This document shows positions 1 to 50,745 of a stretch of 64,000 bases of DNA, piece by piece (the first letter of the stretch is position 1; the number at the start of each line of letters is the position of its first letter). The DNA is taken from assembly GCF_036588685.1 (NCBI RefSeq), contig NC_086377.1:61876001-61940000 (forward strand). Direction: 5' to 3'. A model generated the notes under the pieces. It was not told the DNA's origin and searched no databases. It saw only the letters and a program-made list of their open reading frames with translations. This DNA is from Mytilus trossulus (Eukaryota). A program made the position numbers and the translations under genes.

Positions 1-1916
1 TGTATAGATTCACCATAAACTCGCTATCACCTACAATCAAATCACACAAAACATAATTTTCATCAGTGTTTGCCCACCCACATCGTTGTCCAGTGAAAAT
101 GTGCATTTCGAATTAAAAACAAAAAACCTAACCTTTTTTGTATTTACGTAAAAACAAAAAACTGAATTTCAATCATAAAATGATCAGACGAAGAACATGA
201 TTTAAAGTTTAACTACTAGTATAACCCGAATTTTCCAGGTCATCCCAGTAATCTATCTTTTCCACTAACGCAACGATTTGATTATGAATAGAGAATTTTG
301 AGTTTCAAACAAAACTTACGTACGTTTAAGCAAGTAACTAAAACGTACAATTACGGACTCATAGATTTTTCGAACGAACCGAAAGTACGTACCACTGCAT
401 GAACGCATGCGTTTACTAACATTTAATTTTCAATAAATTTCTTTCTACTTAAGTTTAGAAATATACTTGAAATTTAAGGCAAAGTTTGTCAGAAATTACT
501 GAATTGCTTCGATTTGAAAATTAATTCACATTGAAGTAAATTTACAATACAATATATTTCAAGTTTATCAGAATTTATAAAAAGTTTTTTAGTTGGAATT
601 GAATAACGAATAATGAGAATTTAAAATATTTTCTACTTCTAATTTATGAGAATTTAATCTGTTATGTTTTTTTTGCAATTTAAAGTCTAGTTAAATTGCA
701 TTTGACCCCATCTTTAATGAGAGTTATTTTTATAGTATACATATAGTTAGGAGTGGTTTAAAGCAAATTAGCACAATATAGCATTTATTTTATATTCAAG
801 TTATTCTATTCTTTTTTCTTCTTTGCATTTGTTCACTGAATTATCGGATAACGAGGAAAGTTACTATACATTACTTTTGTGCAGACATTTGAGACAACAG
901 TTATTTAATCTTATAGGTTGAATATATCGGCTAATAAATCATTTATTAAAAAAGACTATGTTTTGGGGTCAAAGTTGCTACTAATTCTTTACTCCCCTTT
1001 CCATTATTATATAACTTCTTTTACATTGCAAATTATAATTTTCCTCGTACATAATTTAACAATTTTGGGGTTATTAAGAAATATGGCTTTTAGTTTTCTC
1101 AATTTGATTGTTTCATAGTTTTTATGTCGGGGCTTATTGTAGCCGACTATACGGTATAGGGTTTTTCTCATCGTTGAAGGACGTTCTGTACGGTTGCCTA
1201 TAACTTAAATCCACTTCATCTGAATTTTGGTGGATATACATATATATAATTTATATATATATATTGAGCATTTTGAAATTTAATTTAGTTTATTTTCTAC
1301 TAGTGTGGACACAGAATTCAATTTTAAGTAAACTTAGTTGTCTCATCGGCAAATATGCCACATCTCCTTATTTTTATAAACATCAAATATGGTGTATTAT
1401 GCTATTAAACGGTTGAATCATTCGTATATTATTCGGCATTATTTATATTCCTTTGCATTATCAGTATAGTCAGTGTTATTAAATTTTGCAATAAATAAGC
1501 ATATGTTGTAATTGTTCAGCATACATCTAGTTTTGCTTAGTATGAATCCAAAATTGTATCCTTATGTTCGTAGAGCTTACCTCCCTTTGATTGCAAAAGA
1601 TGCATCCAGGGGAACTAACTGCGCTGCATTTACAACAACGTTTTATTTGGTTATTCTTAAATATTAGATACATGCTGATTGGTTAATTTACCGTTTATAT
1701 CTTTCTATTTACTACCACAACAACGCCAGCACATAAACGAATTTGTAATATACAATCAAGGTTAAAAAAAAAATAGAAAAAGGACATGGCTATTTTCCTA
1801 AACAGATCATATATCTAGTATCTGTTTATGTAAACAAAACAATTGAAAGAGTCTGGCCAATCTTTGAATTAAGAAGCCGAAGAAAAATAAAAATATGAAG
1901 CAAGTGCAAGACATAA

Positions 1917-2890
1917 TAGTGTCCTGTGAAAATGTGTCCACCTGGACAGTTTTTCATTGAATTTTGGTATTTAATAATGTCCATTAATTGGACATATTTT
2001 TACTGCAAAAACCATGAAATAGCGTTAACCACAGGACAACTTTCATAGAATCTGCTATTAAATTGTGTCCTCCAAGGGAAGTAATACAAAGGTCATTAAA
2101 AAGTGTTAATATACTTGAATTTTAATAAAATCTGAACAATTGAAAAGAAACTCGCATGACTGATTACTATACAAATGTTAACAAACATATTATGGTTGGA
2201 AACGAATATAGAGACATTAATTTCTTTGAAATACCCAGTTAATGCTAATGGCAATGAAAGAAGAAAGTTTGTAAAGTATAAAAATCAAATTTGAGCAACT
2301 TTACTATACTTATAATGAGAAGAAGACAAAATACAATATAGAATTTTGGTATAAATAATGTCCATTGTAATAAAATGTTGTTCTGTAAGTGGACAGCAGT
2401 TAACAAAAATAGCTACAGGTATGAAATATGGTCCAACTACAGGACAATGTTTATAAGTAGTTAGTGTTATTAAAATATGTCTAGTATGACCTTGGAAAAT
2501 AATACTGAAAAGCATTTTGAACTTAAATCATTATACATTTACTTATCAAAAAATATAAATAAGAAGATAAGGATGGTATACATGTGTACTGATGAAACAA
2601 CTCTTTTTCAAAAAAACAATGTATTCAAGTTCGCAATTATACATGTAGGTTACAATACGTATAGTTTACAAGGCGATAAATATCATTTACTACTTTATCA
2701 TATAAAAAATTGTCTGTGTGGACACATTATCCTGAGATAAAATATCCCTCTGGACAGAATTATAGAATTAGATAATGTCCACGTCCATGGACACTTTTTC
2801 ATACCTGAGGGCATATTTTGCATAGGAAATCGGGTCCATGGACAGTATTTACTATGAAATAATGTCCAGTGGACACTATTTCATAAAAAT
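1917..2890. repeat. Loose array of imperfect TGTCC...GGACA palindromes (probably an old nested element)
   Basis: Repeated motifs tgtccacctggaca, tgtccattaattggaca, gtccatggaca, tgtccagtggaca. Mirrored at ~48205-49212. Confidence 0.6.
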
Positions 2891-3130
2891 CATACACAAC
2901 CACTACGAAATGTAGAAATGTAGAAAATCGGTCTTTTTTTCCAAATTCCGTTTTTTTTTATTTTTGATATCTTATACTATTTATTTCGTATCTGCTAATT
3001 CATTTACTGTAATTGCAAACAGATTCCCTTATACAAGTGTGTGTGGCACTCTGTTCATGATATTAAAACAAGTATGACAATGATTATAGGAAAATCATAG
3101 TGCAATGGTTATGTTGACATGCTGACTATG

Positions 3131-3240
3131 TTAAAGGGGCACTAGCTGTCAAATTCATGTTCACCGATTTAATTCAAAATCTCATATTTTATTTATAACA
3201 ATGTAAAACATTTATCCAAACTATTAAACGTTTAAATAGA
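3131..3240 (+). mobile_element. One end of a Kolobok-like non-autonomous element (fragment)
   Basis: TTAA followed by AGGGGCACTAGCTG, resembling TTAA-flanked Kolobok-type termini. No partner end within the same transposon copy. Confidence 0.4.
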
Positions 3241-4435
3241 TAATTTACATTATATAGTCTTCTATAAATTTTTATTTTCTCACAATTTGTATAAGTATTA
3301 GGATTATACATAAATCCACCAGAGACCAACAGATATAGGTTCATCGCATGACCGTCACCAATGAGATAATCTCATACACTGTATTGAAATTAAGCCATCA
3401 ATTACAAGTAATTAAATATAAAACAATAACAACTAAGCGAAATTGAAAAAGCACGGTCAGAATATACGTAAATAATAAACTAAACGAAAACAAGAAAACC
3501 CAAGGACTTGATATTGACTTTGGACAGGAACGTCCAAGAACCGGTTTAAACATATTTACAATCCGCTTATATATCTTGGACAGTGTTGGAACAATCGCTG
3601 ATGTCGGATTTAGGACAATGACTGCTCAACACTTATCTGACATAAAACATACGTCAAGTGCTTGTTTCTAATTGTTCTTACTATAAATATTATCTGAAGC
3701 AATGTTTGTGATTAAAATGCTTGTAATCATACTTGTAACATAAAATGTGTTTACGTTATAATATTTGGAGTGTTCATAAAAAGAAGATATGTTGGATAAA
3801 CGTTTCCGCTTTAAAAGCCTCAATCTGAAAAGTCACATACTTTTGATAAAACGGTTCTAAAGCGTGAAAATGCGCTATGTTCAATCTATTTAGAAGTAGA
3901 ATCAGAATAATTTCACTGATCTGACTTCTGACTTCACCATGCGTGATTGCGTATTTAGTACTATTTACACATTCCCGAGCATTGCCTAGATTTGCGTTAT
4001 ACTCTAATAAAATTGAGAATGGAAATGGGGAATGTGTCCAAGAGACAACAACCCGACCATAGAAGAAAAAGAAAACAACAGAAGGTCACCAACAGGTCTT
4101 CAATGAAGTGAAAAATTCCCGCACCCGGAGCCGTCCTTCAGCTGGCCCCTAAATATTATCTAAACACGAAAGCAGTGCTAGGTTCATCCTAGTACTATAA
4201 CCTAGCCTTATAGTACTGAAATGTTAACTGCTTCGACAGTTAACCGTACCTTTTTGGGGTTTTTAAATATTTAGAACTAAATCTCGAAGCCTATATCTAC
4301 TCTATTGAACTGAAATCTTAGGCTAGTATGCTCTCTGCAAATGTGAAAAATCGTATATATATTCGATTCCCGACTGTATCAAACCAAACTCTTGAAAATA
4401 GTGTTGCAGAATCACAAAGCAGTTTACTATATGCA

Positions 4436-4662
4436 TATATATCTCAGTAGCATGGGTTCGAATCCCGGCGAGGGAAGAACAAAAAGCTTGCGAAAGCAAA
4501 TTTACAGATCTTACATTGTTGGGTTGATGTTTAGACGAGTTGTATATACAGAATGTACACAGCCATGTATCACCATCAATGTTGATGGATGATCCGATGG
4601 ATAAATCTGTTGTAGAGTTGTCACTGGTTCAGACGGACTTACAATATATATATATATATATA
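4436..4662 (+). mobile_element. tRNA-derived SINE-like repeat
   Basis: Pol III B-box-like GGTTCGAATCC at 4455-4465 and a (TA)n tail. The head is deleted in copy 2 (remainder at ~46620-46790). Confidence 0.5.
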
Positions 4663-6154
4663 AAAAATAGACCGCTTACTTCTCTCATAAAGCGAAGAAA
4701 AAAAAACTATCTCGAAATGTGTTTCAGGGATAATGATGAACTTAAGCATGCGGAGCACCCCCCCCCCCTTTTTTTTTTAATCATATGAGAAAGTTGAGCT
4801 GTGAATGTTTTGTTTCATAAATGAAAACTAGGCAATCTTGCAGAACTATTTGAAAGTTTTAGTAGTCAGTTTATAACAACTGATGACGAAAACACAATTT
4901 CCATCCCATTATTACATTTTGACGTCATGCATACTAAAATTAGTTCAAGTTGTTATTGTATGAAAACTATCTTATCTTAATACTGAAATCTATCTTTGTT
5001 TTCTATTTAATGTCACACGAACATAAAGTTCGAAACCAAAAACTTTTTCTAGAGAACCAATATCATGCATAAGTACAAAGTCATGTACGATTGACAAAAA
5101 AATACACCGACTCATTTAACATCAAATCAAAAAGGTCGAATCAAAGGACTTTATTCGGAAAGGTAACATTAATACGAATAATCCGACATTGATATTTTGA
5201 CATTGAGACCGAACTTAAAGGTAATATTCATTTTGTACAAGTCATGATGACAAGCTCAAAATCATCGTATGTCGTAGGTCTTCTTCAAAAGAAAGGTTTT
5301 TTTACAAGAACTTCCACACAGGTAAAATGGCAAACACAATATGCTTGAATTATCCTATACAACAGTTGCATGTTGCTTTTGAATTAAGTTCTATTTAACT
5401 CTAGAATTTTTTCTTGTATCACAATTGTACCACATCGGTAGTTTCACGGTAAAGAGTTTGTAATTGTCCTATGTACAGGCTTAGATGTTGTGGGTTTGAT
5501 CAAAGAGCAAAGACAAAGTCTTGTAATAATATCAAGCAAATTGTGTTCTTTTTCGCACTATAAATGAAGTCATTATTTTAAATGCCAACTCAGTGTATCG
5601 GTCTACATACGTTGTAAATCTTCTAAAACCGTTCGCATTAAAATTAGAGTGAACTGTTTGTTGATGTTACGCAGCTACCTAAAAATCTTAATCAATTTTC
5701 TCTATAAATATGTATTAAAATAATAAAGATTTTCTTTGTTTATATGAGAACGAACATTTGATATTCTTTGAGGGAGATTATAACACCTGAGTATTCTGGT
5801 CTTGTTATACATGTCTCTGGAAAAAGACCATTTTAGATAAATAAAAGAAAAAGCCGGCTTCGCAAAAGGGGGAAATTGATATTCTCCACCCGAAATCGTC
5901 TACTGCCCCTCTGCAACAATAACATGGTCATCCCCTTTAACAGTACACAGGAAGAGAAGTTGAAAGAGAACAATTTCGCAATTCCTAGATAATTTCATCG
6001 TGCAGTGGCAAGTATTACAGATATATTTTGAACGAACCAATTCAACAAACCATATCCATTTCAATGAATATGACATAGAATATTCATTTGTCATAAGAAA
6101 ACTGGATCTGTCGATATGTGAAGGGAACTTTATCACCGAGGTGTCAACGTATAC

Positions 6155-6310
6155 AAAAAGAAGATGTGGTTATGATTGTTAATGAGACAACTCTCCACAA
6201 GAGTCCAAAATGACACAGAAATTAACAACTATAGATCACCGTTCGGCCTTTTACAATGAGCAAAGCCCATACAGCATAGTCAGCTATAAAAGGCCCCGAA
6301 ACGACAATCT
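6155..6310 (-). repeat. Abundant interspersed repeat, conserved end (relatives at ~1130-1380, 4010-4150, 9620-9810, 10988-11140, 41342-41600, 60636-61007, 61742-62025)
   Basis: Shared core AAGAAGATGTGG...AATGAGACAACTCTCCA...CGGCCTT...AGCTATAAAAGGCCCC in many differently truncated copies. Confidence 0.75.
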
Positions 6311-7583
6311 AGTACTGTAATGGCCACAAGCGTGTCAAAACTGAGGCTGTGACTGTGGTTCTTTCTTCGGCAAAGTGTGTTCAGCTTAGATCTTTAAAAA
6401 TAGACACACGTTACTTGTTTTCTTGTCGAAGGCCAGTGGTTTTCTCTGGCTTTCTCTACAAATTAATCTTGATTGTCATGGAAAACCAAGCGTAATGAAA
6501 GTGTCACTAAAACCAGCAAGCAACTAATTGTTCATACGATTCTTTTCGTTTACGGGTAAAATGATTTTATTTTAGTTTGAACCATGTATTTGCAAGACAT
6601 AAGTGCGGAAACATTTTTCATCACTTTTTTATAATGATTTTCGGAGGACCCTAATTGTGCGCCTATTCCTAAGAACAGATATACTGTATTTTTTGGCCAA
6701 AAATATTGACTAAATCATTTTAATTTCGGAGATCTTGAATAATATAGTTAATACAAGTATGTATGCCATTGTATCATTCAGGTTTGTTTTTAATGTTCAC
6801 CGGCAGACGACTTTGTCAACACCGACTCCAATGAAGTGAAATTTCGATTACAACTGTGAGAAGATGAGGAAGTGGGGAGGGGCAGGGGAACGGTCCCCTT
6901 ATGGAATACCATATTTGTAAAGTGCTTACACTTTTTTTTAAAGTAACAGTCAAAATATTTGCTGACTAGTCCCTTTTTTTAAGTGGTTTATCATTTTCAA
7001 ACAAAATGGGTGACGGATCTATGAAATGTCGTAATATATAGGCAATCGCACCGCAATCCAATCTGTAAAAATCGAGAAATCGTTATTATGTGTCTTTGTA
7101 TGTACATGTATATTTCATCTTTTAGTATCATAGAAAGAAAGATGCAAATGTGGTTCAATGGAATCTTTTGTGTAACTATTACAGCTATGTTTGTTTACCA
7201 ATCACAGTTTCTCTGATATAGACAGATGTGGCATATACAATTTGGTATACATTGGCCTTATGTATTAAAGCAGAGTTCAAGATTTAGATAAAGCAAAACT
7301 TAAGTATATGGAATTTTATAGAGGTACGGTTAATTTCCCTGTATTTTTTATACTTCATGTAACGTGTCGAAATTTTGTACTTGCAAAAATCCAAATTATC
7401 CATTTGATAAAGCACATATGATTTACATAACAATGCACAATACAAGTGTACAACATATAAAACATCAGTGAAAATTAACCACAAGTCTATTTTATTGGAA
7501 GGAAAAATATACATGGTCCATAATCTCATGCTTTGTTCTTTTAATGATAGCCTAACGAATGGATATCAAGAATACTTTTCAGA

Positions 7584-7652
7584 TTCAAACTCTGAACCTT
7601 TCCAAATTTAAACTCTGAACCTTTCCAAATTCAAACTCTGAACCTTTCCAAA
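7584..7652. repeat. 3 x 23-bp tandem repeat (TTCAAACTCTGAACCTTTCCAAA); also at ~15597-15665 and ~43575-43643
   Basis: Directly visible in the sequence. Confidence 0.95.
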
Positions 7653-10600
7653 TGCGCTGTCTAGGCATGTAAGTAATATTTATACTTCCATGGTTTAGGT
7701 ATCTATTAAAATCTGAGATCAAAATTTCCATAAGTTTTTTTTAAATATAAAGGTCTGTATACAAAGGTCGTAACTTGAGTTTATCAATTATAATCCAATA
7801 TGCAGTTTAAAACTCCCCTGCGATTTAAATTGCTTATGGGTGTCCAACAGATCGTTTAATAATAAATACTAAAAACTTGCAAATACATGTACATGTATCT
7901 GTAAAATTGAAGTCGTGTGCCATGCATCTGAACAAATTTTTATAATACAGTAATAAGATAATCAAGTGTCCGAAAATATGCAAAACAAATATATGTGTAA
8001 ATCTAAAAGTACACATTTGACACTACATGTATGGTCTTAGTAGAAAAAAAATAAAGGAAATTAGCTGCTCTCCATGTTTAAACTATTTTTAAAATGTTTG
8101 CCTTTTTAAAGTTACAGATGGTGAATTTCACTCCTTCTTTTATTGCGAAATAAATAAACATGTAAGAAATGATAACTTCTCTGCAAATGATTTTCAAAAT
8201 ACTGATTTTATGTGTTGCACTAACAGACAAAAACATACTCATCATGATCAATAAATAAAAAAAATCAGCATATTTTAGGCTCGTTTGTAAACTGAGGACA
8301 GGGCTTGATTTACCGATGCATGGTTTAAAGTTTTGTGGTTTATTAATATGCTGTAATTTGTATTTAGGTTTTCACTATATTACATGTATATACTTGCAAC
8401 AATAGATACATGTATATATATACATATATATATTATATGTATGTGTATATGTTACGTTTTATTTTCTGTTTGTCACAAACACGTTTGATTTGTTGAAATA
8501 TATATGACAATAAAGATTATTATTATTTATTTTATCAACGCCTGACTTTTAATTATTCAGGTTTTTTTTACCCTAACCATGGAAGTGAAATAATTAAAGA
8601 GGTTATATGACCTCATTGCCCTAACTCTAATGTAAATAAAATCTGGCAGATATTTTCACATCCGCAAGAACAAATGTTTCGTAGTAGGGTGCATTTTCTG
8701 ATAAAGGATCAAAGGACGCCAATAGTACTTTATTATAAAACTTTCATCACAATAAAATCGTGGCGTTCCTGATCAATTAACTTAATGGGACGTGTTAAAC
8801 TATTATATGATAATTTGAACTCTGACTTGATATATAGTCGTTTATCTACAAATTTAGAAAATCGACATATAATCTAAACAATGTAAAGTTCTTTTTATAT
8901 ATTTACAAATGTAGACGGGTGTTTAAATAGTAAATAATATAAATGTATATTCCATACAGTTTTTTCTCTTTCTTTTATTTATTGTTGCACCATGCATTGC
9001 ATGAATAGACTAAAAGAAAATATGTCTACTTAGCTAAAAAGCTGCTACGAAAGGCGATGTAAAACATATAAATTGTATTCTAAAATACATTTTATAATAT
9101 CATAACGTATTCTATAGTAAACATGTTTAGACAAGGAATCTACATTTTTTGTATTGATCCTTTTTAATATTATTAAAAAAAAAAATGCATAATGGATATT
9201 TTACTATTTTTCGAAAGATATTTATCAGAGATATTTACTAGAATAATTAAATCCTGAATAAATCCCTACTGAACCATTTTGTATATGCGGATATAAACAT
9301 TCGTTTGATAACATGTAAGAGATGTATAACGAATCAGATGTGGATACAAAATATTCCATAGACTTTTTTCCTCTTGTAATCCTATAAAGATTTTATACTT
9401 ATATTTAAAATTTTAAATCAAAGTTATTTGTCCAATTTTGCTTTATAAAAAAGAAAGCAAAGTTTAACGTAGATACTGATATCTGGTTTCATGGAGGAAT
9501 AAATTATACTTGGTGATAGACCCCAAGGGTTGACTGGGATTTAGATATATTGTCCTCTTTGGTACTAATGGTTCCAGTAGTAAAATCCTTGCGCTATTGC
9601 GGCTTCCATTTTGGTTGTTTGGGATACATAAATATAGGTAGTCGTGCCTCTTCGGAATTAGGACAGGAACTTGATATTCAGTGGTTATCATTTGTTGGTG
9701 TGGTTATTTTTAAAATATAAGACCGTTGGTTTTCCCGTTTAAACGGTTTTCCACTACTTATTTTTGGGGCCCTTGTTGAAGACCGTACTTTGACCTATTA
9801 TGGTTTACTTTAGTTAAGTTTGTCTCTCAACTTGACTTATACATCTAGAAATTGACCGTGATGGCCGATTTCAAACAAACACTTGACATAAAAGAGATGA
9901 TGGCGTCTACCTAACTTTTTATGTCTTTGAAAAATATCTTAGCAGCTCTTGTGTATAGCTTGTATAGCTCCATTTGATACAATATTCCGGAGCTTTTATG
10001 TCCTCACACAATTTCTGTGATACTATTGATGTTTGTCTAAGGTCTAGGACAAATGTGTCATGCATTATCAGGATGAGACCAATTAAAAGTAAATCTATAC
10101 AATATTTAGGTCCTGGAATAGGGGTTATACCGGGATGGTGCCTGGAAAGTTGGAATGCAAATTGAAAATGTTGGTATATGGAAAAGGAACAGAATTTAGG
10201 CCTTGTAACTGACCAACGCCGTTCCTCTCACAGAATTGTTACAAGGGTTCATACTTTAATAAAGCATCGGCATCTTGTAACGTAACGTTGTCTTTCTGAC
10301 CGGACGAATTTATACATCACACACAGTCCAGCGTGTCTTCTGTCGTGGTAAGATGACCAAACAATTATCATGTTTCTAGACCCCTGACGACAAATAGGAT
10401 CTACTTGATAATAAGAAGCAAGCTATAAACCCATGGGTTCCACGTGATGTAGTTATAGTTATCCTTTCGAAAAGAGGGACAAAAGATACCAAAGGGACCG
10501 TCAAACTTATAGATCGAAAATAATATGACAATCTGAGCTGCTACGAACCAATCTCGTGTTGGTTACAATTCAGTAATATTTATTTCACAGATAACCAGCA

Positions 10601-10896
10601 ATATGTTCCTTAGAGTATTGCATGTTTTGATCGTCCTGTTTGCCTTGAACGTTACATCTAGGAATGAAACTTCTTATCAAATTTGTTCATAAATGATCAA
10701 CATGACGGTTGCCATTTATGAAGCATGATCTGCATATCCTTTAGGAGCCGGCACAATTTTAGTTCATTTCTTGGAAGCACAACACTTATTGTTATATACA
10801 TGTACGTATTGTTATTTGAAGTTCATGTGAATTAATCGTTTCTTTCAATAAATATTGTGAACTGTTGATAGACAATGGTAATGTTAGCTTGTCGGG

Positions 10897-10987
10897 CACA
10901 GGCACTTGTCTCAGAAAAAAAATGTTCCTATGTATACCTGTTATATTAACGTATATAAGATTTTTTTTTCTGAGACAAGTGCCTGTG
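10897..10987. mobile_element. 91-bp micro-MITE with ~26-bp TIRs and an 8-bp TSD (P- or hAT-like)
   Basis: CACAGGCACTTGTCTCAGAAAAAAAA ... TTTTTTTTCTGAGACAAGTGCCTGTG, with TTGTCGGG on both sides (10889-10896, 10988-10995). Confidence 0.85.
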
Positions 10988-11474
10988 TTGTCGGGGCCTT
11001 TTATTGCCGACTATTTATACGGTATTGTTTTTTGTCATTGTTAAAGGCCGTGCAATTGCTTATAATTGCTTAAATCCTCTTCATATGAACTTTGGTGGAT
11101 AGCTGTCTCATTGATAGGAATACCACATATCCTTATTTTTATATTGTGTTCTTCGTTGAGTAAATACACCTTCTTCGAGAATAAGTTTTTAATGGCAATT
11201 CTTGGTGGTGTTCCCGAAGCTGTCTTAGGATAATTACGTGTTCTAAGACTATCTTATGACATGTCTTTGTCTAACTTGATCTATTGCATTGATCGTCCTA
11301 ACCGTAGGACAGTACACCTATTTATATGCATTAAAATGCATTAGTATTTAATTAATAACCCATATTATACTAGATTCTTTATCTATATATTCTTTTAGAA
11401 CTTACATAGTTCTCATTAATCTCTTATTTTATATCATTGGTTGAAAATTATTGATGTTTTTGCCCTTCAAATAA

Positions 11475-11808
11475 GAAAGATAATATCATTGGACGTTTCA
11501 AGTTGGCTGGACTTCAACTTCATCAAAAACTACCCTAACCAAAAACTTTAACTTAAATTTCGCACTATCATTTCTATGTTTAGTGGACCGTTATCAGGGT
11601 CAAAACTTTAATTTGGCATAAAGATTAGAACGATCATATTACAGGGAACATGAGTACTAAGTGTCAAGTTCATTGAACTTCAACTTCATCAAAAACTACA
11701 TTGACCAACAAAAATTAACCTTGACCGGTACAGACGGACGGACGAACGGACGGACGTACAGACCAGAACATATAATGTCTCTCTTTTATCGTAGGTGGGG
11801 CATACAAA
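11475..11808 (+). mobile_element. Helentron-associated (HINE/DINE-1-like) non-autonomous element; duplicates at ~19486-19820 and ~38823-39155
   Basis: Two core repeats (CTTCAACTTCATCAAAAACTAC), then a (GACG)n microsatellite, then a short terminal GGGGCAT stem. This is the usual HINE layout. Confidence 0.65.
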
Positions 11809-14800
11809 CGTAGGAAAAAAATATTTCAATATACGGCAGGGGGTCATGCTTACATTGCTTGTGTATTTTCCTGAATAAGTTAAATAATACTTATGTCTTC
11901 ATATTTCAGTCTTAACAATTCAAAATTATAAGATTGTGTTTCTTGTTTGCCTATGACATTGAATTTGATATACATGTATATATATATATTATTTTCTGTA
12001 TTTGTTTTGGCTCACATCGAACAGCAAGCTATTAAAAATAACTAGTGTAAAACCAGTCAAATGGCAAACCATAGGTTTAATTTATTTAAAAAACGAGAAA
12101 CGAGAAACACTTATGAACCGTATTTATCAACAGAACACCAGATTCCGGACTTTGGGCATGTGCAAACAAAAGCAAGGGGTTTAAACGTTTTAATTGGTAC
12201 AGACCCCTTACTTTATCTGAAACAATAGTGTATTATCACAACACAGAAAGACAGGGTCTCAAGAAAGATTAGCTTTATAGCTAACTGTGTAACCATCTTT
12301 AAATAAAGAATTATTATTATTATTATTAGACACGTGACAGACATAGACAGACATATATAGCTTGCCTTACGTTTTGTGAGATTCTATCGTCATTGTTATC
12401 TTTAGATATTTATCTTTGGTCGCATGTTTTTTTTTGCTCACTCTTTCGTTCAATGCTTCTTTCATTTATACATTTGAGTTTCCTGCGAAAAGTTATGATG
12501 TTCGGAAGGGTCGATTTTTACCCTCCCGGAGCACCTGAGATCACCCTATTTTTATGTGGGGTTCGTGTTGCTTATTCTTTAGATTTCTATGTTGTGTCAT
12601 GTGAACTATTGTTTTTCTGTTTGTTTGTTTTTTTAAATTTTTTGCCATGGCCTCTTGTCTTATGAATCTAGAATCCTTGCATACTAAACTCAAAGGGACA
12701 CATAAAGCGAAGAAAAAAAAACTATCTCGAAATGTGTTTCAGGAATAATGATGAACTTAAGCATGCAGAGCACCCCCCCCCCTTTTTTTTTTAATCATAT
12801 GAGAAAGTTGAGCTGTGAATGTTTTGTTTCATAAATGAAAACTAGGCAATCTTGCAGAACTATTTGAAAGTTTTAGTAGTCAGTTTATAACAACTGATGA
12901 CGAAAACACAATTTCCATCCCATTATTACATTTTGACGTCATGCATACTAAAATTAGTTCAAGTTGTTATTGTATGAAAACTATCTTATCTTAATACTGA
13001 AATCTATCTTTGTTTTCTATTTAATGTCACACGAACATAAAGTTCGAAACCAAACACTTTTTCTAGAGAACCAATATCATGCATAAGTACAAAGTCATGT
13101 ACGATTGACAAAAAAATACACCGACTCATTTAACATCAAATCAAAAAGGTCGAATCAAAGGACTTTATTCGGAAAGGTAACATTAATACGAATAATCCGA
13201 CATTGATATTTTGACATTGAGACCGAACTTAAAGGTAATATTCATTTTGTACAAGTCATGATGACAAGCTCAAAATCATCGTATGTCGTAGGTCTTCTTC
13301 AAAAGAAAGGTTTTTTTACAAGAACTTCCACACAGGTAAAATGGCAAACACAATATGCTTGAATTATCCTATACAACAGTTGCATGTTGCTTTTGAATTA
13401 AGTTCTATTTAACTCTAGAATTTTTTCTTGTATCACAATTGTACCACATCGGTAGTTTCACGGTAAAGAGTTTGTAATTGTCCTATGTACAGGCTTAGAT
13501 GTTGTGGGTTTGATCAAAGAGCAAAGACAAAGTCTTGTAATAATATCAAGCAAATTGTGTTCTTTTTCGCACTATAAATGAAGTCATTATTTTAAATGCC
13601 AACTCAGTGTATCGGTCTACATACGTTGTAAATCTTCTAAAACCGTTCGCATTAAAATTAGAGTGAACTGTTTGTTGATGTTACGCAGCTACCTAAAAAT
13701 CTTAATCAATTTTCTCTATAAATATGTATTAAAATAATAAAGATTTTCTTTGTTTATATGAGAACGAACATTTGATATTCTTTGAGGGAGATTATAACAC
13801 CTGAGTATTCTGGTCTTGTTATACATGTCTCTGGAAAAAGACCATTTTAGATAAATAAAAGAAAAAGCCGGCTTCGCAAAAGGGGGAAATTGATATTCTC
13901 CACCCGAAATCGTCTACTGCCCCTCTGCAACAATAACATGGTCATCCCCTTTAACAGTACACAGGAAGAGAAGTTGAAAGAGAACAATTTCGCAATTCCT
14001 AGATAATTTCATCGTGCAGTGGCAAGTATTACAGATATATTTTGAACGAACCAATTCAACAAACCATATCCATTTCAATGAATATGACATAGAATATTCA
14101 TTTGTCATAAGAAAACTGGATCTGTCGATATGTGAAGGGAACTTTATCACCGAGGTGTCAACGTATACAAAAAGAAGATGTGGTTATGATTGTTAATGAG
14201 ACAACTCTCCACAAGAGTCCAAAATGACACAGAAATTAACAACTATAGATCACCGTTCGGCCTTTTACAATGAGCAAAGCCCATACAGCATAGTCAGCTA
14301 TAAAAGGCCCCGAAACGACAATCTAGTACTGTAATGGCCACAAGCGTGTCAAAACTGAGGCTGTGACTGTGGTTCTTTCTTCGGCAAAGTGTGTTCAGCT
14401 TAGATCTTTAAAAATAGACACACGTTACTTGTTTTCTTGTCGAAGGCCAGTGGTTTTCTCTGGCTTTCTCTACAAATTAATCTTGATTGTCATGGAAAAC
14501 CAAGCGTAATGAAAGTGTCACTAAAACCAGCAAGCAACTAATTGTTCATACGATTCTTTTCGTTTACGGGTAAAATGATTTTATTTTAGTTTGAACCATG
14601 TATTTGCAAGACATAAGTGCGGAAACATTTTTCATCACTTTTTTATAATGATTTTCGGAGGACCCTAATTGTGCGCCTATTCCTAAGAACAGATATACTG
14701 TATTTTTTGGCCAAAAATATTGACTAAATCATTTTAATTTCGGAGATCTTGAATAATATAGTTAATACAAGTATGTATGCCATTGTATCATTCAGGTTTG

Positions 14801-18908: not shown

Positions 18909-19000
18909 CACAGGCACTTGTCTCAGAAAAATAAATGTTCCTATGTATACCTGTTATATTAACGTATATAGGATTTTTTTTTCTGAGACAAGTGCCTGTG
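18909..19000. mobile_element. Micro-MITE, copy in the second 8-kb unit
   Basis: Same TIRs and TTGTCGGG TSD. Confidence 0.85.
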
Positions 19001-33200: not shown

Positions 33201-33365
33201 TGGAATAGATTCTATATATGCCTCAATAACTCTCCTTCAATAAAGACATTATTATTTTCGTTATTTCTATAAACAATAACGTCCAGCAAAAAGCAATCTA
33301 TTTTTTTTGTATGTAATAACACCTAATATAAGAAAGCCAGATTTTTATTGGTTGGTAGCCAGTGT

Positions 33366-36424: not shown

Positions 36425-39400
36425 TTAGAATGACTTAAAAGTTCAGATTTATACTCGAATTAGAGTTATGATAAAAGATTGAAAGTAATTAACTTTATGA
36501 TCATGTTTTGGTCTAGTTTTTTATTCAAAAAAAAAAATGTTTCAATGTCGTTAATCACAGATAATTGACCATAATCATTTCCGAAACCGAATTGTTTACT
36601 GACAAATGTTGACACATACATAACTGATTAATTGCATGTAGATAAACCATGCGGTTTTTTTTAATTTCCAACGGAATTTTAAAATCATTTAATTATAAAC
36701 ATACTTAATGATATTGCCAGCTTCGTTCTTTGTTTTCCATATGAAATCCCTTTCAATCATACCTTGCTGGAAACCACACCGTATTTATTGCTGAAAGGGA
36801 AAAGATACGCTCTTTTGCATTTGAATGCATTTAATTGCATGCATAAAATAAAAAAAACTGAGAACTGAACAAATGTATATGTGTAGAAAGTTTCAAATTA
36901 TACAAAAAGTAAAATATATATTCATAGAATTTCACGACTTCATTAATATTACGTTATAATAAACACAACAACATGTTTTCAAAGTTAGTAAAATGTCCCA
37001 GTTTTTGTACAATCAATACACAAATTGTAAGCGTACAATATTCATGCGAATCTTTTGCCGACAACAATCATGCTTAGCTTTGTAATCCGTTGAAAAATAA
37101 AAATAAATGACAATTTGCTAAAAGTATTGAATTTTCATTTCGCAAACATAGTGCATTGTAACAGTTATGTTGCACTACATAAAAATAAAGATTGTATATA
37201 AGCTATCCCTTCCCATATGCACAATGAATAATTACTTACTGCAATTTGTACAGGGACATTAATCTTTTGGCTTCTTTTTTTATGCATCTGTTTTTGAGTG
37301 TAGCATTTGAATCAAAATATCCACTTTCTTTTTAACATTACTTTGATTTTCTTGCACTTTTATCGTAGGACGTGTAGAAAAATCCGTTTGTTCGGAACAA
37401 AACTCGAGCAGTTCAACCCTGATATTTTAAGATGTCTGCACGTTGATTTTATTTACATTCAGATAATTTATCATTCATATAATTTTTGGTATATTAGATA
37501 AATAATTTCTGTTAAAAATATCTAATTTTCCGCTTTTCCAAAAACGAGGTTTATGTGTTTCCTATATGAAGTTTGACAGGGGTCGTTTCAACAAAGCGTC
37601 TGGTAAAAAAATGTCTTTAGACACTCTTACAGATTTTGAAATGCTTCTTATAAATAGTTACGATTGTGTTCTGCACAGGGTTGTGGTGTATTGTTTAAAT
37701 TCAAATCTTTATTAAATTTTGTTCATCTAGACCTCTGGAATGATTTTTCAAGTGAATATCTTTGTTAACTCTTTTTGAATTAGTTTTATGCATGAAGCGA
37801 ATTTTTATTTATCAGTTGTTTACCAATCTCTTAAACACATTATTTTTACTGAATAAAAGGATGTGTACTTTGATGGGTTTTACATATGATATTAATATAT
37901 ATTTTTAAAAATCTTCCTTCTCTAATTCCGTCTCAAATGTCCCTTTGAGTTTAGTATGCAAGGATTCTAGATTCATAAGACAAGAGGCCATGGCAAAAAA
38001 TGGAAAAAAAACCAACAGAAAAACAATAGGTTACATGACACAACATAAAAATCTAAAGAATAAGCAACATGAACCCCACATAAAAATAGGGTGATCTCAG
38101 GTGCTCCGGGAGGGTAAAAATCTACCCTTCCGAACATCATAACTTTTCGCAGGAAACTCAAATGTATTAATGAAAGAAGCATTGGACGAAAGAGTAAGCA
38201 AAAAAAACATGCGACCAAAGATAAATATCTAAAGATAACAATGACGATATAATCTCACAAAACGTAAGGCAAGCTATATATGTCTGTCTATGTCTGTCAC
38301 GTGTCTAATAATAATAATAATAATTCTTTATTTAAAGAGGGTTACACAGTTAGCTATAAAGCTAATCTTTCTTGAGACCCTGTCTTTCTGTGTTGTGATA
38401 TTACACTTTTGTTTCAGATAAAGTAAGGGGTCTGTACCAATTAAAACGTTTAAACCCCTTGCTTTTGTTTGCACATGACCAAAGTCCGGAATCTGATGTT
38501 CTGTTGATATACAGTTCATAAGTGTTTCTCGTTTCTCGTTTTTTAAATAAATTAAACCTTTGGTTTGCCATTTGAATGGTTTTACACTAGTTATTTTTTA
38601 TAGCTTGCTGTTCGATGTGAGCCAAAACAAATTCAGAAAATAATATATATATAACCATGTATATCAAATTCAATGTCATAGGCAAACAAGAAACACAATC
38701 TTATAATTTTGAATTGTTAAGACTGAAATATGAAGACATAAGTATTATTTAACTTATTCAGGAAAATACACAAGCAATGTAAGCATGACCCCCTGCCGTA
38801 TATTGAAATTTTTTTCCCTACGTTTGTATGCCCCACCTACGATAAAAGAGAGACATTATATTTTCTGGTCTGTACGTCCGTCCGTTCGTCCGTCCGTCTG
38901 TACCGGTCAAGGTTATTTTTTTTGGTCAATGTAGTTTTTGATGAAGTTGAAGTTCAATGAACTTGACACTTAGTACTCATGTTCCCTGTAATATGATCGT
39001 TCTAATCTTTATGCCAAATTAAAGTTTTGACCCCAATAACGGTCCACTAAACATAGAAATGATAGTGCGAAGTTTAAGTTAAAGTTTTTGGTTAGGGTAG
39101 TTTTTGATGAAGTTGAAGCCCAGTCAACTTGAAACATCCATGATATTATCTTTCTAATTTGCAAAAACATCAATAATTTTCAACCAATGATATAAAATAA
39201 AAGATTAATGAGAACTATGTAAGTTCTAAAATAATATGTAGATAAAGAATCTAGTATAATATGGGTTTTTAATTAAATACTAATGCATTTTAATGAATAT
39301 AAATAGGTGTCCTACGGTTAGGACGATCAATGCGATAGATCAAGTTAGACAAAGACATGTCATAAGATAGTCTTAGAACACGTAATTATCCTATGATAGC

Positions 39401-39631
39401 TTCGGGAACACCACCAAGAATTGCCATTAAAAACTTATTCTCGAAGAAGGTGTATTTACTCAACGAAGAACACAATATAAAAATAAGGATATGTGGTATT
39501 CCTATCAATGAGACAGCTATCCACCAAAGTTCATATGAAGAGGATTTAAGCAATTACAAGCAATTGCACGGCCTTTAACAATGACAAAAAACAATACCGT
39601 ATAAATAGTCGGCAATAAAAGGCCCCGACAA

Positions 39632-39721
39632 CACAGGCACTTGTCTCAGAAAAAAAAATCTTATATACGTTAATATAACAGGTATACATAGGAACATTTT
39701 TTTCTGAGACAAGTGCCTGTG
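39632..39721. mobile_element. Micro-MITE, copy in transposon copy 2
   Basis: Same TIRs; TSD CCCGACAA on both sides. Confidence 0.85.
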
Positions 39722-42700
39722 CCCGACAAGCTAACATTACCATTGTCTATCAACAGTTCACAATATTTATTGAAAGAAACGATTAATTCACATTAACTTC
39801 AAATAACAATACGTATATAACAATAAGTGTTGTGCTTCCAAGAAATGAACTAAAATTGTGCCTGCTCCTAAAGGATATGCAGATCATGCTTCATATATGG
39901 CAACCGTCATGTTGATCATTTATGAACAAATTTGATAAGAAGTTTCATTCCTAAATGTAACGTTCAAGGCAAACAGGATGATCAAAACATGCAATACTCT
40001 AAGGAACATATTACTGGTTATCTGTGAAATAAATATTACTGAATTGTAACCAACACGAAATTGGTTCGTAGCAGCTCAGATTGTCATATTATTTTCGATC
40101 TATAAGTTTGACGGTCCCTTTGGTATCTTTTGTCCCTCTTTTCGAAAGGATAACTATAACTACATCACGTGGAACCCATGGGTTTATAGCTTGCTTCTTA
40201 TTATCAAGTAGATCCTATTTGTCGTCAGGGGTCTAGAAACATGATAATTGTTTGGTGATCTTACCACGACAGAAGACACGCTGGACTGTGTGTGATGTAT
40301 AAATTCGTCCGGTCAGAAAGACAACGTTACGTGACAAGATGCCGATGCTTTATTATAATATGAACCCTTGTAACAATTCTGTGAGAGGAAAGGCGTTGGT
40401 CAGTTACAAGGCCTAAATTCTGTTCCTTTTCCATATACCAACATTTTCAATTTGCATTCCAACTTTCCAGACACCATCCCGGTATAACCCCTATTCCAGG
40501 ACCTAACTATTGTATAGATTTACTTTTAATTGGTCTCATCCTGATAATGCATGACACATTTGCCCTAGACCTTAGTCAAACATCAATAGTATCACAGAAA
40601 TTATGTGAGGACATAAAAGCTCTGGAATATTGTATCAAATGGAGCTATACAAGCTATACACAAGAGCTGCTAAGATATTTTTCAAAGACATGAAAAGTTA
40701 GGTAGACGCCATCATCTCTTTTATGTCAAGTGTTTGTTTGAAATCGGCCATCATGGTCAATTTCTAGATGTATAAGTCAAGTTGAGTGACAAACTTAACT
40801 ATACAGTGGTATCCTTTCAAGTTCGATACGATAGATCGATACATTCGACGGAGTCACCATCATTGAACTATTTAGCGAGAGGACATCATCTACATATCGG
40901 ACTGTTAATATAATTTGAATGTTCCGAAGGAAATGTTACTCGTATGAATAATGAAATAGTCTACGAGCATAAACCCAGTTAATTTCCATATAATGCCGAT
41001 TCCTTGTCGAAAAGTTGTCACCCAAACTTACAGATATGTAGTCAATAAAAATTACCAATCATCTTGAAAAAAGCAGCTTCAGAGAATTTCTGTATGAATA
41101 TAAAGAGATTTTTTTTTTACATTATGTTGATAAATTGTTCATTACTAAATGTTCTGTGACAAACTCATGTGTGTTTAGGACGATGACCATGAGTAACGTT
41201 AGGATGTGCAAGGTTCTGGTCTGCAAGGAAGGCGGACGGAAAATGTTGGACTGTCATTGGAAAATAAGGGCATGTTACGTACGGACTCCTTCTTTAACGT
41301 GCAATCAGCAACACTCGTTTACACAAAGCACCGGATTACATAGATATAAGAAGATGAAGTATGACTGCCAATGAGACAACTCTCCATCCAAGTCACAATT
41401 TGTAAAAGTAAACCATAATAGGTCAAAGTACGGTCTTCAACAAGGGCCCCAAAAATAAGTAGTGGAAAACCGTTTAAACGGGAAAACCAACGGTCTAATA
41501 TTTTAAAAATAACCACACCAACAAATGATAACCACTGAACATCGAGTTCCTGTCCTAATTCCGAAGAGGCACGACTACCTATATTTATGTATCCCAAACA
41601 ACCAAAATGGAAGCCGCAACAGCGCAAGGATTTTACTACTGGAACCATTAGTACCAAAGAGGACAATATATCTAAATCCCAGTTAACCCTTGGGGTCTAT
41701 CACCAAGTACAATTTATTCCTCCATGAAACCAGATATCAGTATATACGTTAAACTTTGCTTTTTTTTTTATAAAGCAAAATTGGACAAATAATTTTGATT
41801 TAAAATTTTAAATATAAGTATAAAATCTTTATAGGATTACAAGAGGAAAAAAGTCTATGGAATATTTTGTATCCACATCTGATTCGTTATACATCTCTTA
41901 CATGTTATCAAACGAATGTTTATATCCGCATATACAAAATGGTTCAGTAGGGATTTATTCAGGATTTAATTATTCTAGTAAATATCTCTGATAAATATCT
42001 TTCGAAAAATAGTAAAATATCCATTATGCATTTTTTTTTTTAAATAATATTAAAAAGGATCAATACAAAAAATGTAGATTCCTTGTCTAAACATGTTTAC
42101 TATAGAATACGTTATGATATTATAAAATGTATTTTAGAATACAATTTATATGTTTTACATCGCCTTTCGTAGCAGCTTATTAGCTAAGTAGACATATTTT
42201 CTTTTAGTCTATTCATGCAATGCATGGTGCAAAAATAAATAAAAGAAAGAGAAAAACTGTATGGAATATACATTTATATTATTTACTATTTAAACACCCG
42301 TCTGCATTTGTGAATATATAAAAAGAACTTTACATTGTTTAGATTATATGTCGATTTTCTAAATTTGTAGATAAACGACTATATATCAAGTCAGAGTTCA
42401 AATTATCATATAATAGTTTAACACGTCCCATTAAGTTAATTGATCAGGAACGCCACGATCTTATTGTGATGAAAGTTTTATAATAAAGTACTATTGGCGT
42501 CCTTTGATCATTTATCAGAAAATGCGCCCTACTACGAAACATTTGTTCTTGCGGATGTGAAAATATCTGCCAGATTTTATTTACATTAGAGTTAGGGCAA
42601 TGAGGTCATATAACCTCTTTGGTTATTTCACTTCCATGGTTAGGGTAAAAAAAAAACCTGAATAATTAAAAGTCAGGCGTTGATAAAATAAATAATAATA

Positions 42701-45700
42701 ATCTTTATTGTCATATGTATTTCAACAAATCAAACGTGTTTGTGACAAACAGAAAAAAAACCGTAACATATACACATACATATAATATACCAGTATATAT
42801 GTATATATATACATGTATCTATTGTTGCAAGTATATACATGTAATATAGTGAAAACCCTAAATACAAATTACAGCATATTAATAAACCACAAAACTTTAA
42901 ACCATGCATCGGTAAATCAAGCCCTGTCCTCAGTTTACAAACGAGCCTAAAATATGCTGATTTTTTTTATTTATTGATCATGATGAGTATGTTTTTGTCT
43001 GTTAGTGTAACACATAAAGTCAGTATTTTGAAAATCATTTGCAGAGAAGTTATCATTTCTTACATGTTTATTTATTTCGCAATAAAAGAAGGAGTGAAAT
43101 TCACTATCTGTAACTTTAAAAAGGCAAAAAATTTTAAAAATAGTTTAAACATGGAAAGCAGCTAATTTCCTTTAAATTTTTTTCTACTAAGACCATACAT
43201 GTAGTGTCAAATGTGTACTTTTAGATTTACACATATATTTGTTTTACATATTTTCGGACACGTGATTATCTTATTACTGTATTATAAAAATTTGTTCAGA
43301 TGCATGGCACACGACTTCAATTTTACAGATACATGTACATGTATTTGCAAGTTTTTAGTATTTATTATTAAACGATCTGTTGGACACTCATAAGCAATTT
43401 AAATCGCAGGGGAGTTTTAAACTCCATATTGGATTATAATTGATAAACTCAAGTTACGACCTTTGTATACAGACCTTTATATTTAAAAAAAACTTATGGA
43501 AATTTTGATCTCAGATTTTAATAGATACATAAACCATGGAAGTATAAATATTAATTACATCCCTAGACCGCGCATTTGGAAAGGTTCAGAGTTTGAATTT
43601 GGAAAGGTTCAGAGTTTAAATTTGGAAAGGTTCAGAGTTTGAATCTGAAAAGTATTCTTGATATCCATTCGTTAGGCTAACATTAAAAGAACAAAGCATG
43701 AGATTATGGACCATGTATATTTTTCCTTCCAATAAAATAGACTTGTGGTTAATTTTCACTGATGTTTTATATGTTGTACAATTGTATCGTGCATTGTTAT
43801 GTAAATCATATGTGCTTTATCCAATGGATAATTTGGATTTTTGCAAGTACGAAATTTCGACACGTTACATGAAGTATAAAAAATACAGGGAAATTAACCG
43901 TACCTCTATAAAATTCCATATACTTAAGTTTTGCTTTATCTAAATCTTGAACTCTGCTTTAATACACAAGGCCAATGTATACCAAATTGTATATGCCACA
44001 TCTGTCTATATCATAGAAACTGTGATTGGTAAACAAACATAGCTGTAATAGTTACACAAAAGATTCCATTGAACCACATTTGCATCTTTCTTTCTATGAT
44101 ACTAAAAGATGAAATATACATGTACATACAAAGACACATAATAACGATTTCTCGGTTTTTACAGATTGGATTGCGGTGCGATTGCCCATATATTACGACA
44201 TTTCATAGATCCGTCACTCATTTTGTTTGAAAATGATAAACCACTTAAAAAAAGGGACTAGTCAGCAAATATTTTGACTGTTACTTTTAAAAAAGTTAAA
44301 CACTTTACAAATATGATATTCCATAAGGGGACCGTTCCCCTGCCCCTCCCCACTTCCTCATCTTCTCACAGTTGTAATCGAAATTTCGCTTCATTGGAGT
44401 CGGTGTTGACAAAGTCGTCTGCCGGTGAACATTAAAAACAAACCTGAATGATACAATGGCATACATACTTGTATTAACTATATTATTCAAGATCTCCGAA
44501 ATTAAAATGATTTATTCAATATTTTTGGCAAAAAAATACAGTATATCTGTTCTTATAAACAAACTAAAATAAAATCATTTTACCCGTAAACGAAAAGAAT
44601 CGTATGAACAATTAGTTGCTTGCTGGTTTTAGTGACACTTTCATTACGCTTGGTTTTCCATGACAATCAAGATTAATTTGTAGAGAAAGCCAGAGAAAAC
44701 CACTGGCCTTCAACAAGAAAACAAGTAACGTGTGTCTATTTTTAAAGATCTAAGCTGAACACACTTTGCCGAAGAAAGAACCACAGTCACAGCCTCAGTT
44801 TTGACACGCTTGTGGCCATTGCAGGTACTAGATTATCGTTTCGGGGCCTTTTATAGCTGACTATGCTGTATGGGCTTTGCTCATTGTTGAAGGCCGAACG
44901 TCGATCTATAGTTGTTAATTTCTGTGTCATTTTGGACTCTAGTGGAGAGTTGTCTCATTTACAATCATAACCACATCTTTTTGTATATACGTTGACACCT
45001 CGGTGATAAAGTTCCCTTCACATATCGACAGATCCAGTTTTCTTATGACAAATGAATATTCTATGTCATATTCATTGAAATGGATATGGTTTGTTGAATT
45101 GGTTCGTTCTGTATCTGTATCTGTAATAATTGTCACTGCACGATGAAATGATCTATTAACCGTTCATAGGAATTGCAAAAGTGTTCTCTTTCAACTTCTC
45201 TTTCTGTGTACTGTTAAAGGGGATGACCATGTTATTGTTGCAGAGGGGCAGTAGACGATTTCGGGTGGAGAATATCAATTTTCCCCTTTTGCGATGCCGG
45301 CTTTTTCTTTTTTTTTTTTTTTTTATCTAAAATGGTCTTTTTCCAGAGACATGTATAACAAGACCAGAATATTCAGGTGTTATAATCTCCCTCAAAGAAA
45401 ATCAAATGTTCGTTCTCATATAAACAAAGAAAATCTTTATTATTTTAATAGATATAGGAAGATGTGGTGTGAGTGCCAATGAGACAACTCTCCATCCAAA
45501 TAACACATATTTATAGAGAAAATTGATTAAGATTTTTAGATAGCTGCGTAACATCAACAAACAGTTCACTCTAATTTTAATGCGAACGGTTTTAGAAGAT
45601 TTACAATGTATGTAGACCGATACACTGAGTTGGCATTTTAAAATAATGACTTCATTTATAGTGCGAAAAAGAACACAATTTGCTTGATATTATTACAAGA

Positions 45701-46611: not shown

Positions 46612-46649
<38 letters not shown>

Positions 46650-49600: not shown

Positions 49601-50745
49601 GTATGCTGAACAATTACAACATATGCTTATTTATTGCAAAATTTAAAAACACTGACTATAATGATAATGCAAAGGAATATAAATAATGCCGAATAATATA
49701 CGAATGATTAAACCGTTTAATAGCATAATACACCATATTTGATGTTTATAAAAATAAGGAGATGTGGCATATTTGCCGATGAGACAACTAAGTTTACTTA
49801 ATATTGAATTCTGTGTCCACACTAGTAGAAAATAAATTAAATTTCATTTCAAAATGCTCAATATATATATATATATATGTATATCCACCAAAATTCAGAT
49901 GAAGTGGATTTAAGTTATAGGCAACCGTACAGAACGTTTTCAACGATGAGAAAAACCCTATACCGTATAGTCGGCTACAATAAGCCCCGACATAAAAACT
50001 ATGAAACAATTAAATTGAGAAAACTAAAAGCCATATTTCTTAATAACCCCAACATTGTTAAATTATGTACGAGGAAAATTAGAATTTGCAATGTAACTTG
50101 AAGAAGTTATATAATAATGGAAAGGGGAGTAAAGAATTAGTAGTAACTTTGACCCCAAAACATAGTCTTTTTTAATAAATGATTTATAAGCCGATATATC
50201 CAACCTATAAGATTAAATAACTGTTGTCTCAAATGTCTGCACAAAAGTAATGTATAGTAACTTTCCTCGGTATCCGATAATTCAGTGAACACATGCAAAG
50301 AAGAAAAAAGAAATAGAATAACTTGAATATAAAATAAATGCTATATTGTGCTAATTTGCTTTAAACCACTCCTAACTATATGTATACTATAAAAATAACT
50401 CTCATTAAAGATGGGGTCAAATGTAATTTAACTAGACTTTAAATTGCAAAAAAAAACATAACAGATTAAATTCTCATAAATTAGAAGTAGAAAATATTTT
50501 AAATTCTCATTATTCGTTATTCAATTCCAACTAAAAAACTTTTTATAAATTCTGATAAACTTGAAATATATTGTATTGTAAATTTACTTCAATGTGAATT
50601 AATTTTCAAATCGAAGCAATTCAGTAATTTCTGACAAACTTGTAGTATAATTTGCCTTAAATTTCAAGTATATTTCTAAACTTAAGTAGAAAGAAATTTA
50701 TTGAAAAATTAAATGTTAGTAAACGCATGCGTTCATGCAGTGATA

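Follow-up and report, generated by a model that had tools for sequence, protein, structure and literature searches.

The maize En/Spm element, 8.3 kb long, has CACT(A/G) termini, makes a 3-bp target site duplication (TSD), and encodes a Tnp2-type protein together with a second protein, for which the subterminal repeat arrays of CACTA elements serve as binding sites. Its dSpm/I derivatives are internal deletions that keep both ends and are mobilised in trans. Here we describe a mussel transposon family of a comparable plan, two copies of which lie in inverted orientation within a 64,000-nucleotide stretch of the Mytilus trossulus genome (G000:C5:61876001-61940000 of a 1.3-Gb assembly; hereafter the window, which contains no N). 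The account given below, in which copy 1 (W1) and copy 2 (W2) were inserted independently of each other, tail to tail, and are copies of a non-autonomous deletion derivative of a ~33-kb CACTA/EnSpm family, is in our judgement very probable.

The likeness to maize En/Spm and dSpm extends to the CACT(A/G) termini, the 3-bp TSD, the two-protein autonomous form, and the internal-deletion derivatives. The differences are of size and of gene plan: the autonomous mussel form is ~33 kb, four times the length of En/Spm, and the derivative is ~20 kb; the mussel genes are separate and divergently transcribed, whereas the two En/Spm proteins are alternative splice products of one transcript; and the second mussel gene, here called the helper, has no Pfam similarity, while the subterminal arrays are weak. 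Cut-and-paste elements of such length have rarely been described in animals. A recent preprint (bioRxiv 10.64898/2026.02.10.705023) reports CMC-EnSpm elements as currently inserting in Crassostrea ariakensis, and gives counts at the superfamily level; the mussel family shares with them the superfamily, the host class, and evidence of recent mobility and of insertion polymorphism. Within the portions of the bivalve literature covered by full-text search there is no 20-33-kb family, deletion derivative or helper gene of this kind, and searches of the literature on CACTA or EnSpm in Mytilus yielded no description of this family.

What looks like a 50-kb palindrome in the window was taken by the original prediction for two separate insertions of one element, with the same 11-bp terminal inverted repeat (TIR) and with TSDs of their own, TAC and ATA. 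On direct reading the termini are exactly as claimed. The two termini of the element are called the A end and the B end, and coordinates within W2 count 1-20498 from its A end. The main features are the following.

390-392: left TSD of copy 1, TAC, read directly; equal to 27658-27660.
393-27657 (27,265 bp), plus strand, A end to B end: copy 1, a non-autonomous element of what we call W-type; termini read, BLAST.
393-403 and 27647-27657: 11-bp TIRs of copy 1, read in the sequence.
27658-27660: right TSD of copy 1, TAC, read directly.
27658-30244 (2,587 bp): spacer between the two B ends, single-copy except for three repeat pieces.
30242-30244: left TSD of copy 2, ATA, within a 67-bp satellite, read directly.
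30245-50742 (20,498 bp), minus strand, running on the plus strand from B end to A end: copy 2; termini read, BLAST.
30245-30255 and 50732-50742: TIRs of copy 2, read in the sequence.
50743-50745: right TSD of copy 2, ATA, read directly.
50743-52495: 67-bp satellite array of 26 units, interrupted by copy 2 and continuing in register the array at 30035-30244.
4686-12701 and 12701-20717: internal tandem duplication of copy 1, two units of 8,016 bp, found by self-BLAST.
33365-34139 (775 bp), plus strand: nested insert in copy 2, with a 5-bp TSD, CAGTG, at 33360-33364 and 34140-34144.

Both ends of both copies terminate in CACTGCATGAA. With the slash standing for the junction, copy 1 reads ...GTACG-TAC/CACTGCATGAA...TTCATGCAGTG/TAC-ATTACTTG, and copy 2 reads ...GATT-ATA/CACTGCATGAA...TTCATGCAGTG/ATA-GAAAGG. 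Copy 1 and the reverse complement of copy 2 align by BLAST in collinear blocks of 94-98% identity. A unit of ~20 kb had been proposed for both copies; this is right for copy 2, while copy 1 is 27,265 bp long because of its 8,016-bp tandem duplication, the two units of which are 99.68% identical (19 mismatches). The duplication is private to copy 1 among the sequenced copies. The 775-bp insert, absent from copy 1, has a 241-aa open frame without a Pfam match and an (ATTC)n tail, an anatomy that points to the tail of a 5'-truncated non-LTR retrotransposon (long interspersed nuclear element, LINE). To the left of copy 2 the satellite comprises 3.1 units (30035-30244). Once copy 2 is taken out together with one ATA, the sequence across the joint has an identity of 0.88 at lag 67, whereas the other lags from 64 to 70 give 0.20-0.34. 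The 67-bp period is thus restored, so copy 2 was inserted into the satellite.

Family ends were sought genome-wide with probes of 500 bp and of 80 bp from the extremity of each end, at a threshold of at least 89% identity. The search returned 28 A-ends and 24 B-ends, spread over at least 15 contigs, or about 30 family loci, and with them the further paired termini with different TSDs that had been looked for: at the fetched junctions, 18/18 other paired copies have the same 11-bp TIR, with a single mismatch at position 11 in one paired copy, and a perfect 3-bp TSD that differs from copy to copy. When the window is included, TSDs are perfect in 20/20 pairs and fall into 16 distinct sequences with a weak T-T-A bias. 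Paired copies are 3.2-47 kb long (median ~20 kb). Nine more copies were read from end to end; four of them are collinear, four are rearranged or shorter, and one, C8, is divergent. The collinear ones, C1, C3a, C13a and C10, follow copy 2 along its entire 20 kb, with BLAST identities of 94-99.8% per block, and each has private indels, duplications or nested insertions. Six sequenced copies are therefore collinear over ~20 kb, which bears out the proposal that the whole unit moves as one piece. The 775-bp insert is common to copy 2 and C3a alone among the sequenced copies, so the element kept moving after it had gained this passenger.

The substitution distances, taken over ~10 kb, are 1.4-2.2% between W1 and W2, 0.17-0.45% between W2 and C3a, and 0.65-1.1% between W2 and C1. 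In maximum-likelihood trees, W2 and C3a group together with 100% bootstrap, C1 and then C13a join them at 100% each, and W1 stays outside; its placement is the same when the tree is rooted with C8. The sister of copy 2 is thus on another chromosome (C3a, C3:17046585-17070938). Distinct TSDs, the satellite register and non-sister positions in the tree together make the window copies independent insertions, neither a duplication nor a direct hop, and the two-insertion reading of the apparent palindrome holds.

The alternative that fares best is a local hop, a transposition over 2.6 kb by which copy 2 came from copy 1, or the reverse, to make an inverted pair. Cut-and-paste elements tend toward nearby reinsertion, and the family loci are indeed clustered, as 7 pairs are closer than 2 Mb where 1.7 would be expected (P=0.004), and a single pair is closer than 50 kb where 0.04 would be (P=0.04); under uniform insertion of ~30 loci, the probability of a 2.6-kb gap is estimated at about 0.002. 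A regional or near-copy insertion preference is possible on these counts. A hop between these two copies is nonetheless improbable, given that W2 belongs with C3a, C1 and C13a to the exclusion of W1, that it is several-fold closer to C3a than to W1, and that its LINE tail is present in C3a and absent in W1.

Having established two independent insertions, we consider what was inserted. CACTA/EnSpm membership had been proposed from the termini, and an autonomous relative with the same TIR and a Transposase_21 domain was sought. Two relatives with this TIR and domain were found. The divergent copy C8:63313849-63334186, with the same TIR and TSD ATA, holds a 790-aa frame with PF02992, Transposase_21 (E=7.9e-13). 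A genome-wide search with this frame gave one other near-identical transposase locus, which lies within C4:51692884-51726059, a 33.2-kb paired copy with the same ends, TSD TAT, and a complete 995-aa open reading frame (ORF) that starts with ATG; 13.5 kb of the 33.2 kb of this element were read. The middle third of the C4 ORF matches PF02992 at 48.3 bits against a cut-off of 28.6, with E-values of 8e-13 to 9e-13 for C8 and C4. The domain is not reported when the whole 995-aa ORF is the query, which we take to be a filter effect and not an absence. Among database homologues the best, with 94% identity, is a "transposase domain-containing protein" of 977 aa from Mytilus edulis, and 120/120 homologues among the matches listed have PF02992. 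Other giant-CACTA transposases of the same genome are at most 59% identical to that of this family.

The window copies and the 18 other pairs, then, have CACT(A/G)...(C/T)AGTG termini and 3-bp TSDs without a strict target, and Transposase_21 is found in the C8 and C4 relatives and not in the window copies. The family is real and an unusually large member of CACTA/EnSpm; the superfamily itself and its presence in bivalves were already known. As had been expected of a non-autonomous element, there is no visible transposase in the window copies: the 20 longest stop-to-stop frames of copy 2 include no long ones and match no Pfam family over the cut-off. Since both window copies are without transposase, they are non-autonomous.

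Comparison with the two relatives tells how such an element may have arisen. W2 1-4393 matches the A side of C8, except for a 1.9-kb W2-specific insert, and W2 13381-20498 matches the B side, while W2 4393-13381 is absent from C8. C4 does contain W2 6343-13384, without change of order or orientation and at 88-93% identity, followed by 895 bp found only there; these hold the 231 codons at the C-terminus of the transposase together with its 3' flank, and the C8-type transposase segment comes next. W2 1-13384 and 13381-20498 thus flank a gap equal to C4:51710254-51711148 plus C8 2932-14333, ~12.3 kb in all, that takes in the transposase, the intergenic region, and helper exon 1. The joint has a 4-bp overlap and is common to W1 and W2; an overlap of 4 bp is typical of end-joining or abortive gap repair. 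The relevant features of the window are these.

21289-21292: W-type deletion junction of copy 1, 4 bp common to both sides, from BLAST of the C4 and C8 relatives against W1.
37359-37362: W-type deletion junction of copy 2, 4-bp overlap, from the homology map.
37359-44400, minus strand: non-coding interior in common with the C4 element, 88-93% identity.

With the same ends, a collinear body and the transposase deleted, the 20-kb form is, as far as these alignments tell, a transposase-less deletion derivative of a 33-kb two-gene CACTA/EnSpm element. C8 appears to have lost the C-terminus of its transposase and the ~9-kb interior in a deletion separate from that of the W-type, and one C4-like element of ~33 kb explains both shorter forms.

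The original prediction called the element cargo-laden and Pack-CACTA-like, which would make the 9-kb interior a capture, by a short non-autonomous element, of host DNA or of gene fragments. Pack-MULEs and the soybean Tgm-Express elements are indeed similar in that they are large non-autonomous TIR elements with long internal DNA unrelated to transposase. The interior is also absent from C8, and it is strewn with fragments of dispersed repeats, so that a 12-kb query draws 32,912 first-look candidates. Yet C8 is merely another deletion, and at least 7 kb of the 9-kb interior recur in order and orientation in the transposase-bearing C4 element, so this is the element's own DNA and not a capture. 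High-identity genome matches of a 2-kb interior probe are nearly all within family copies (one 204-bp match of 90% on C19 is without placement). No host-gene fragments were found inside the element, in which it differs from Pack-MULE and Tgm-Express; the only coding remnants are its own helper exons and the nested LINE tail, and the longest frames of copy 2 were silent in Pfam, as said above. A sliding identity comparison of W2 with C8 gave no clear exon-like islands, and purifying selection was indicated in one weak window alone of the same, underpowered, comparison. Capture is thus very unlikely, and both "cargo-laden" and "Pack-CACTA-like" have to be given up in favour of internal deletion.

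Nor is the element quite without coding remains, as five frameshifted 3' exons of the helper gene are left in it. The starting point is a 37-codon exon of copy 2 (35040-35150, minus strand) bounded by the splice signals ...tttgtag/ and /gtaaga. It is 94% conserved in C4 and C8, and has protein matches of 41-52% at 11 other loci, 9 of which sit upstream of other CACTA transposase genes of the same genome, at 8-24 kb and in divergent orientation, in agreement with a two-gene plan at these loci. A HMMER search of 1.84 billion proteins found predicted proteins that contain this exon, the named ones all from Mytilus species, and tblastn with Mytilus proteins P0123, P0124, P0125 and P0128 mapped five helper exons in every copy examined. 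The exons were searched as separate pieces or through database proteins.

21279-25073, plus strand: helper remnant of copy 1, exons at ~21279-21419, 21832-21951, 23118-23210, 23524-23634 and 24754-25073, by tblastn.
32820-37372, minus strand: helper remnant of copy 2, exons at ~37234-37372, 36701-36820, 35446-35538, 35040-35150 and 32820-33140, by tblastn.

In C8 and C4 these exons are intact, the last of them as a single 105-codon frame; in copy 1 the last exon is split over three frames by at least two frameshifts, and in copy 2 it is frameshifted as well, so that two or three frames are seen across the window copies. The first mapped exon abuts the deletion junction in both. Mytilus homologues of 363-385 aa also match a 174-aa frame at C8 9760-10281, which is likely the first helper exon, removed by the W-type deletion. 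By its exon map, then, the helper of the window copies is a 5'-truncated, frameshifted pseudogene. Twelve proteins of the helper family gave no Pfam family over the cut-off, and neither did 30 open frames of W2 and C8. The public predicted proteins P0122, P0123, P0124 and P0125 are built from the helper exons of the element, and the named family members are all from Mytilus. P0123 reproduces the frameshifted last exon of the W-type, and P0125, in which four helper exons are joined to unrelated sequence, is probably a chimeric gene model. Through models such as P0122-P0124, annotation pipelines count transposon debris as host genes.

The original prediction also expected presence/absence variation, and called for empty-site alleles. 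Logan contigs of four runs, three samples under one organism label and one under another, were aligned to 26400-31400. The spacer is covered in 4/4 runs at single-copy depth with 0-6 differences. In all four individuals a contig of single-copy depth fits from 27657 rightward and departs leftward from the B end of copy 1, with loose parts of 409-1,659 letters that do not fit the element; no contig of the four runs bridges the occupied 27657/27658 junction. The fit starts at 27657, and not at 27658, which is what an empty allele ...ACG/TAC... predicts, the base before its single TAC being G as well. These departures suggest that copy 1 is absent in the four other individuals, and make a strong candidate for an empty site, short of proof. 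The loose ends at 30244 have the sequence GAGAGGTT(A) of the uninterrupted satellite, which is not diagnostic for copy 2 as the satellite is repeated. No haplotig with an empty site occurs in the same assembly, where the spacer is unique at high identity, and the exact 28-nt empty-site joint had no match in the JGI metagenome contigs, an uninformative collection for this purpose. Variation in presence is thus likely for copy 1.

The weakest alternative is that a single insertion was doubled, either by segmental duplication into a palindrome or by a foldback artefact of the assembly. It would suit a large inverted repeat with a short spacer and the lack of contigs that bridge 27657/27658 in occupied form, but has next to no standing, as an artefact would predict near-identical arms with one shared outer TSD pair, whereas the two copies have separate perfect TSDs and unlike flanks, copy 2 keeps the register of its satellite, the copies differ by 1.4-2.2% substitutions, the 8-kb duplication, the 775-bp insert and many indels, and their nearest relatives elsewhere in the genome are not the same.

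The history of two independent insertions of a deletion derivative may be pictured as follows. The full-length form, of ~33 kb and represented by C4:51692884-51726059, has CACTGCATGAA as its 11-bp TIRs, a single-exon gene for a 995-aa Transposase_21 protein, and a helper gene of several exons transcribed divergently from it; non-coding DNA makes up more than 20 kb. A single internal deletion of ~12.3 kb, with 4-bp microhomology, would have given the ~20-kb form, which would then have been amplified to ~20 copies. A transposase acting in trans would cut at the CACTG ends and reinsert the whole unit, with a 3-bp TSD each time, and passengers such as the nested LINE tail would travel with it. Copy 2 is a young insertion into the satellite, with its sister on C3, and copy 1 belongs to a different sub-lineage and would have gained its 8-kb internal tandem duplication later. 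We infer both the mobilisation in trans by a C4-type transposase and the order of events.

Several observations weigh against this history. The only intact transposase copy, that of C4, belongs to a subfamily ~7-13% diverged from the W-type over most of the shared DNA, and this assembly has no closer autonomous parent for the W-type. The subterminal repeats that CACTA elements typically have are weakly developed: within the terminal 700 bp of W2 no 8-10-mer reaches four occurrences, and the short motif AGTTTA alone is enriched, at the B end, where the last 200 bp contain it 6 times, while interior bins of 300 bp have no more than 2 per strand. (Between subfamilies, conservation is 97.6% over the terminal 534 bp of the B end and ~88% elsewhere.) It is a presumption that the loose letters of the contigs at copy 1 are those of window 1-392, and the empty site stays a candidate. 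Finally, no excision footprint, transcript or transposition event was observed, and no RNA run contains the locus.

The result is an animal CACTA family documented with its breakpoints, with an autonomous form of ~33 kb and a 20-kb derivative at ~20 copies, and its movement has been very recent, given a divergence between sister copies of 0.2-0.45%. Insertion polymorphisms of 20-27 kb in mussels may plausibly come from this family. A broader reading, which we offer tentatively and with considerable doubt, is that of a Mytilus lineage of giant (20-35 kb) two-gene CACTAs, with ~20 kb of non-coding interior retained across subfamilies and a helper so far seen in Mytilus only, whose 20-kb derivative may still be moving, makes hemizygous presence/absence blocks of 20-27 kb in wild populations, and lands by preference near resident copies. 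If true, mussel genomes, whose structural heterozygosity is large, would owe a measurable part of it to the family, which would also be an animal case of efficient trans-mobilisation of very long cut-and-paste elements.

Some family members have departed further from the common form. Of the rearranged or shorter derivatives, one of 16.6 kb has an inversion, two are of 10.1 and 3.2 kb, and the fourth, of 2.8 kb, is an A-end/A-end form. The 16.6-kb copy (C7:16672026-16688642, L045-L046) has a ~3-kb internal inversion (W2 8609-11557) and deletions, with perfect TAA TSDs. The 2.8-kb form (C3:12620414-12623181, L058) has an 880-bp A end at both extremities, inverted, with mismatched flanking triplets, TCC and TGC, and looks like a product of aberrant transposition or of a rearrangement of two A ends. 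The longest paired copy, 46.9 kb at C14:77218532-77265424, has a perfect GCA TSD and no transposase match, and is presumably swollen by nested insertions. Adjoining CACTA elements are seen again on C13, where a decayed CACTA transposase (C13:27348827-27350582), 45-54% identical to that of the family and interrupted by many stops, lies 2.4 kb beyond the B end of the family copy C13:27353010-27373228.

The three repeat pieces of the spacer are an old dispersed repeat at ~27770-28394, with matches of 70-85% at many loci, a hyper-abundant piece of ~35 bp at 28475-28511, with a contig depth of about 1e5 in all four runs, and the satellite at 30035-30244. Other individuals have indels in the spacer: at 27970-28006, 35 bp are absent in X2; at 28339-28850, ~510 bp are absent in X3; and at 28475-29016, 540 bp are absent in X5. 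The 540-bp variable block begins at the hyper-abundant repeat and may be a small mobile insertion. At 4.5 kb downstream of the interrupted satellite is a second, unrelated one, also with a 67-bp period (56971-57442; 7 units, 92% matches).

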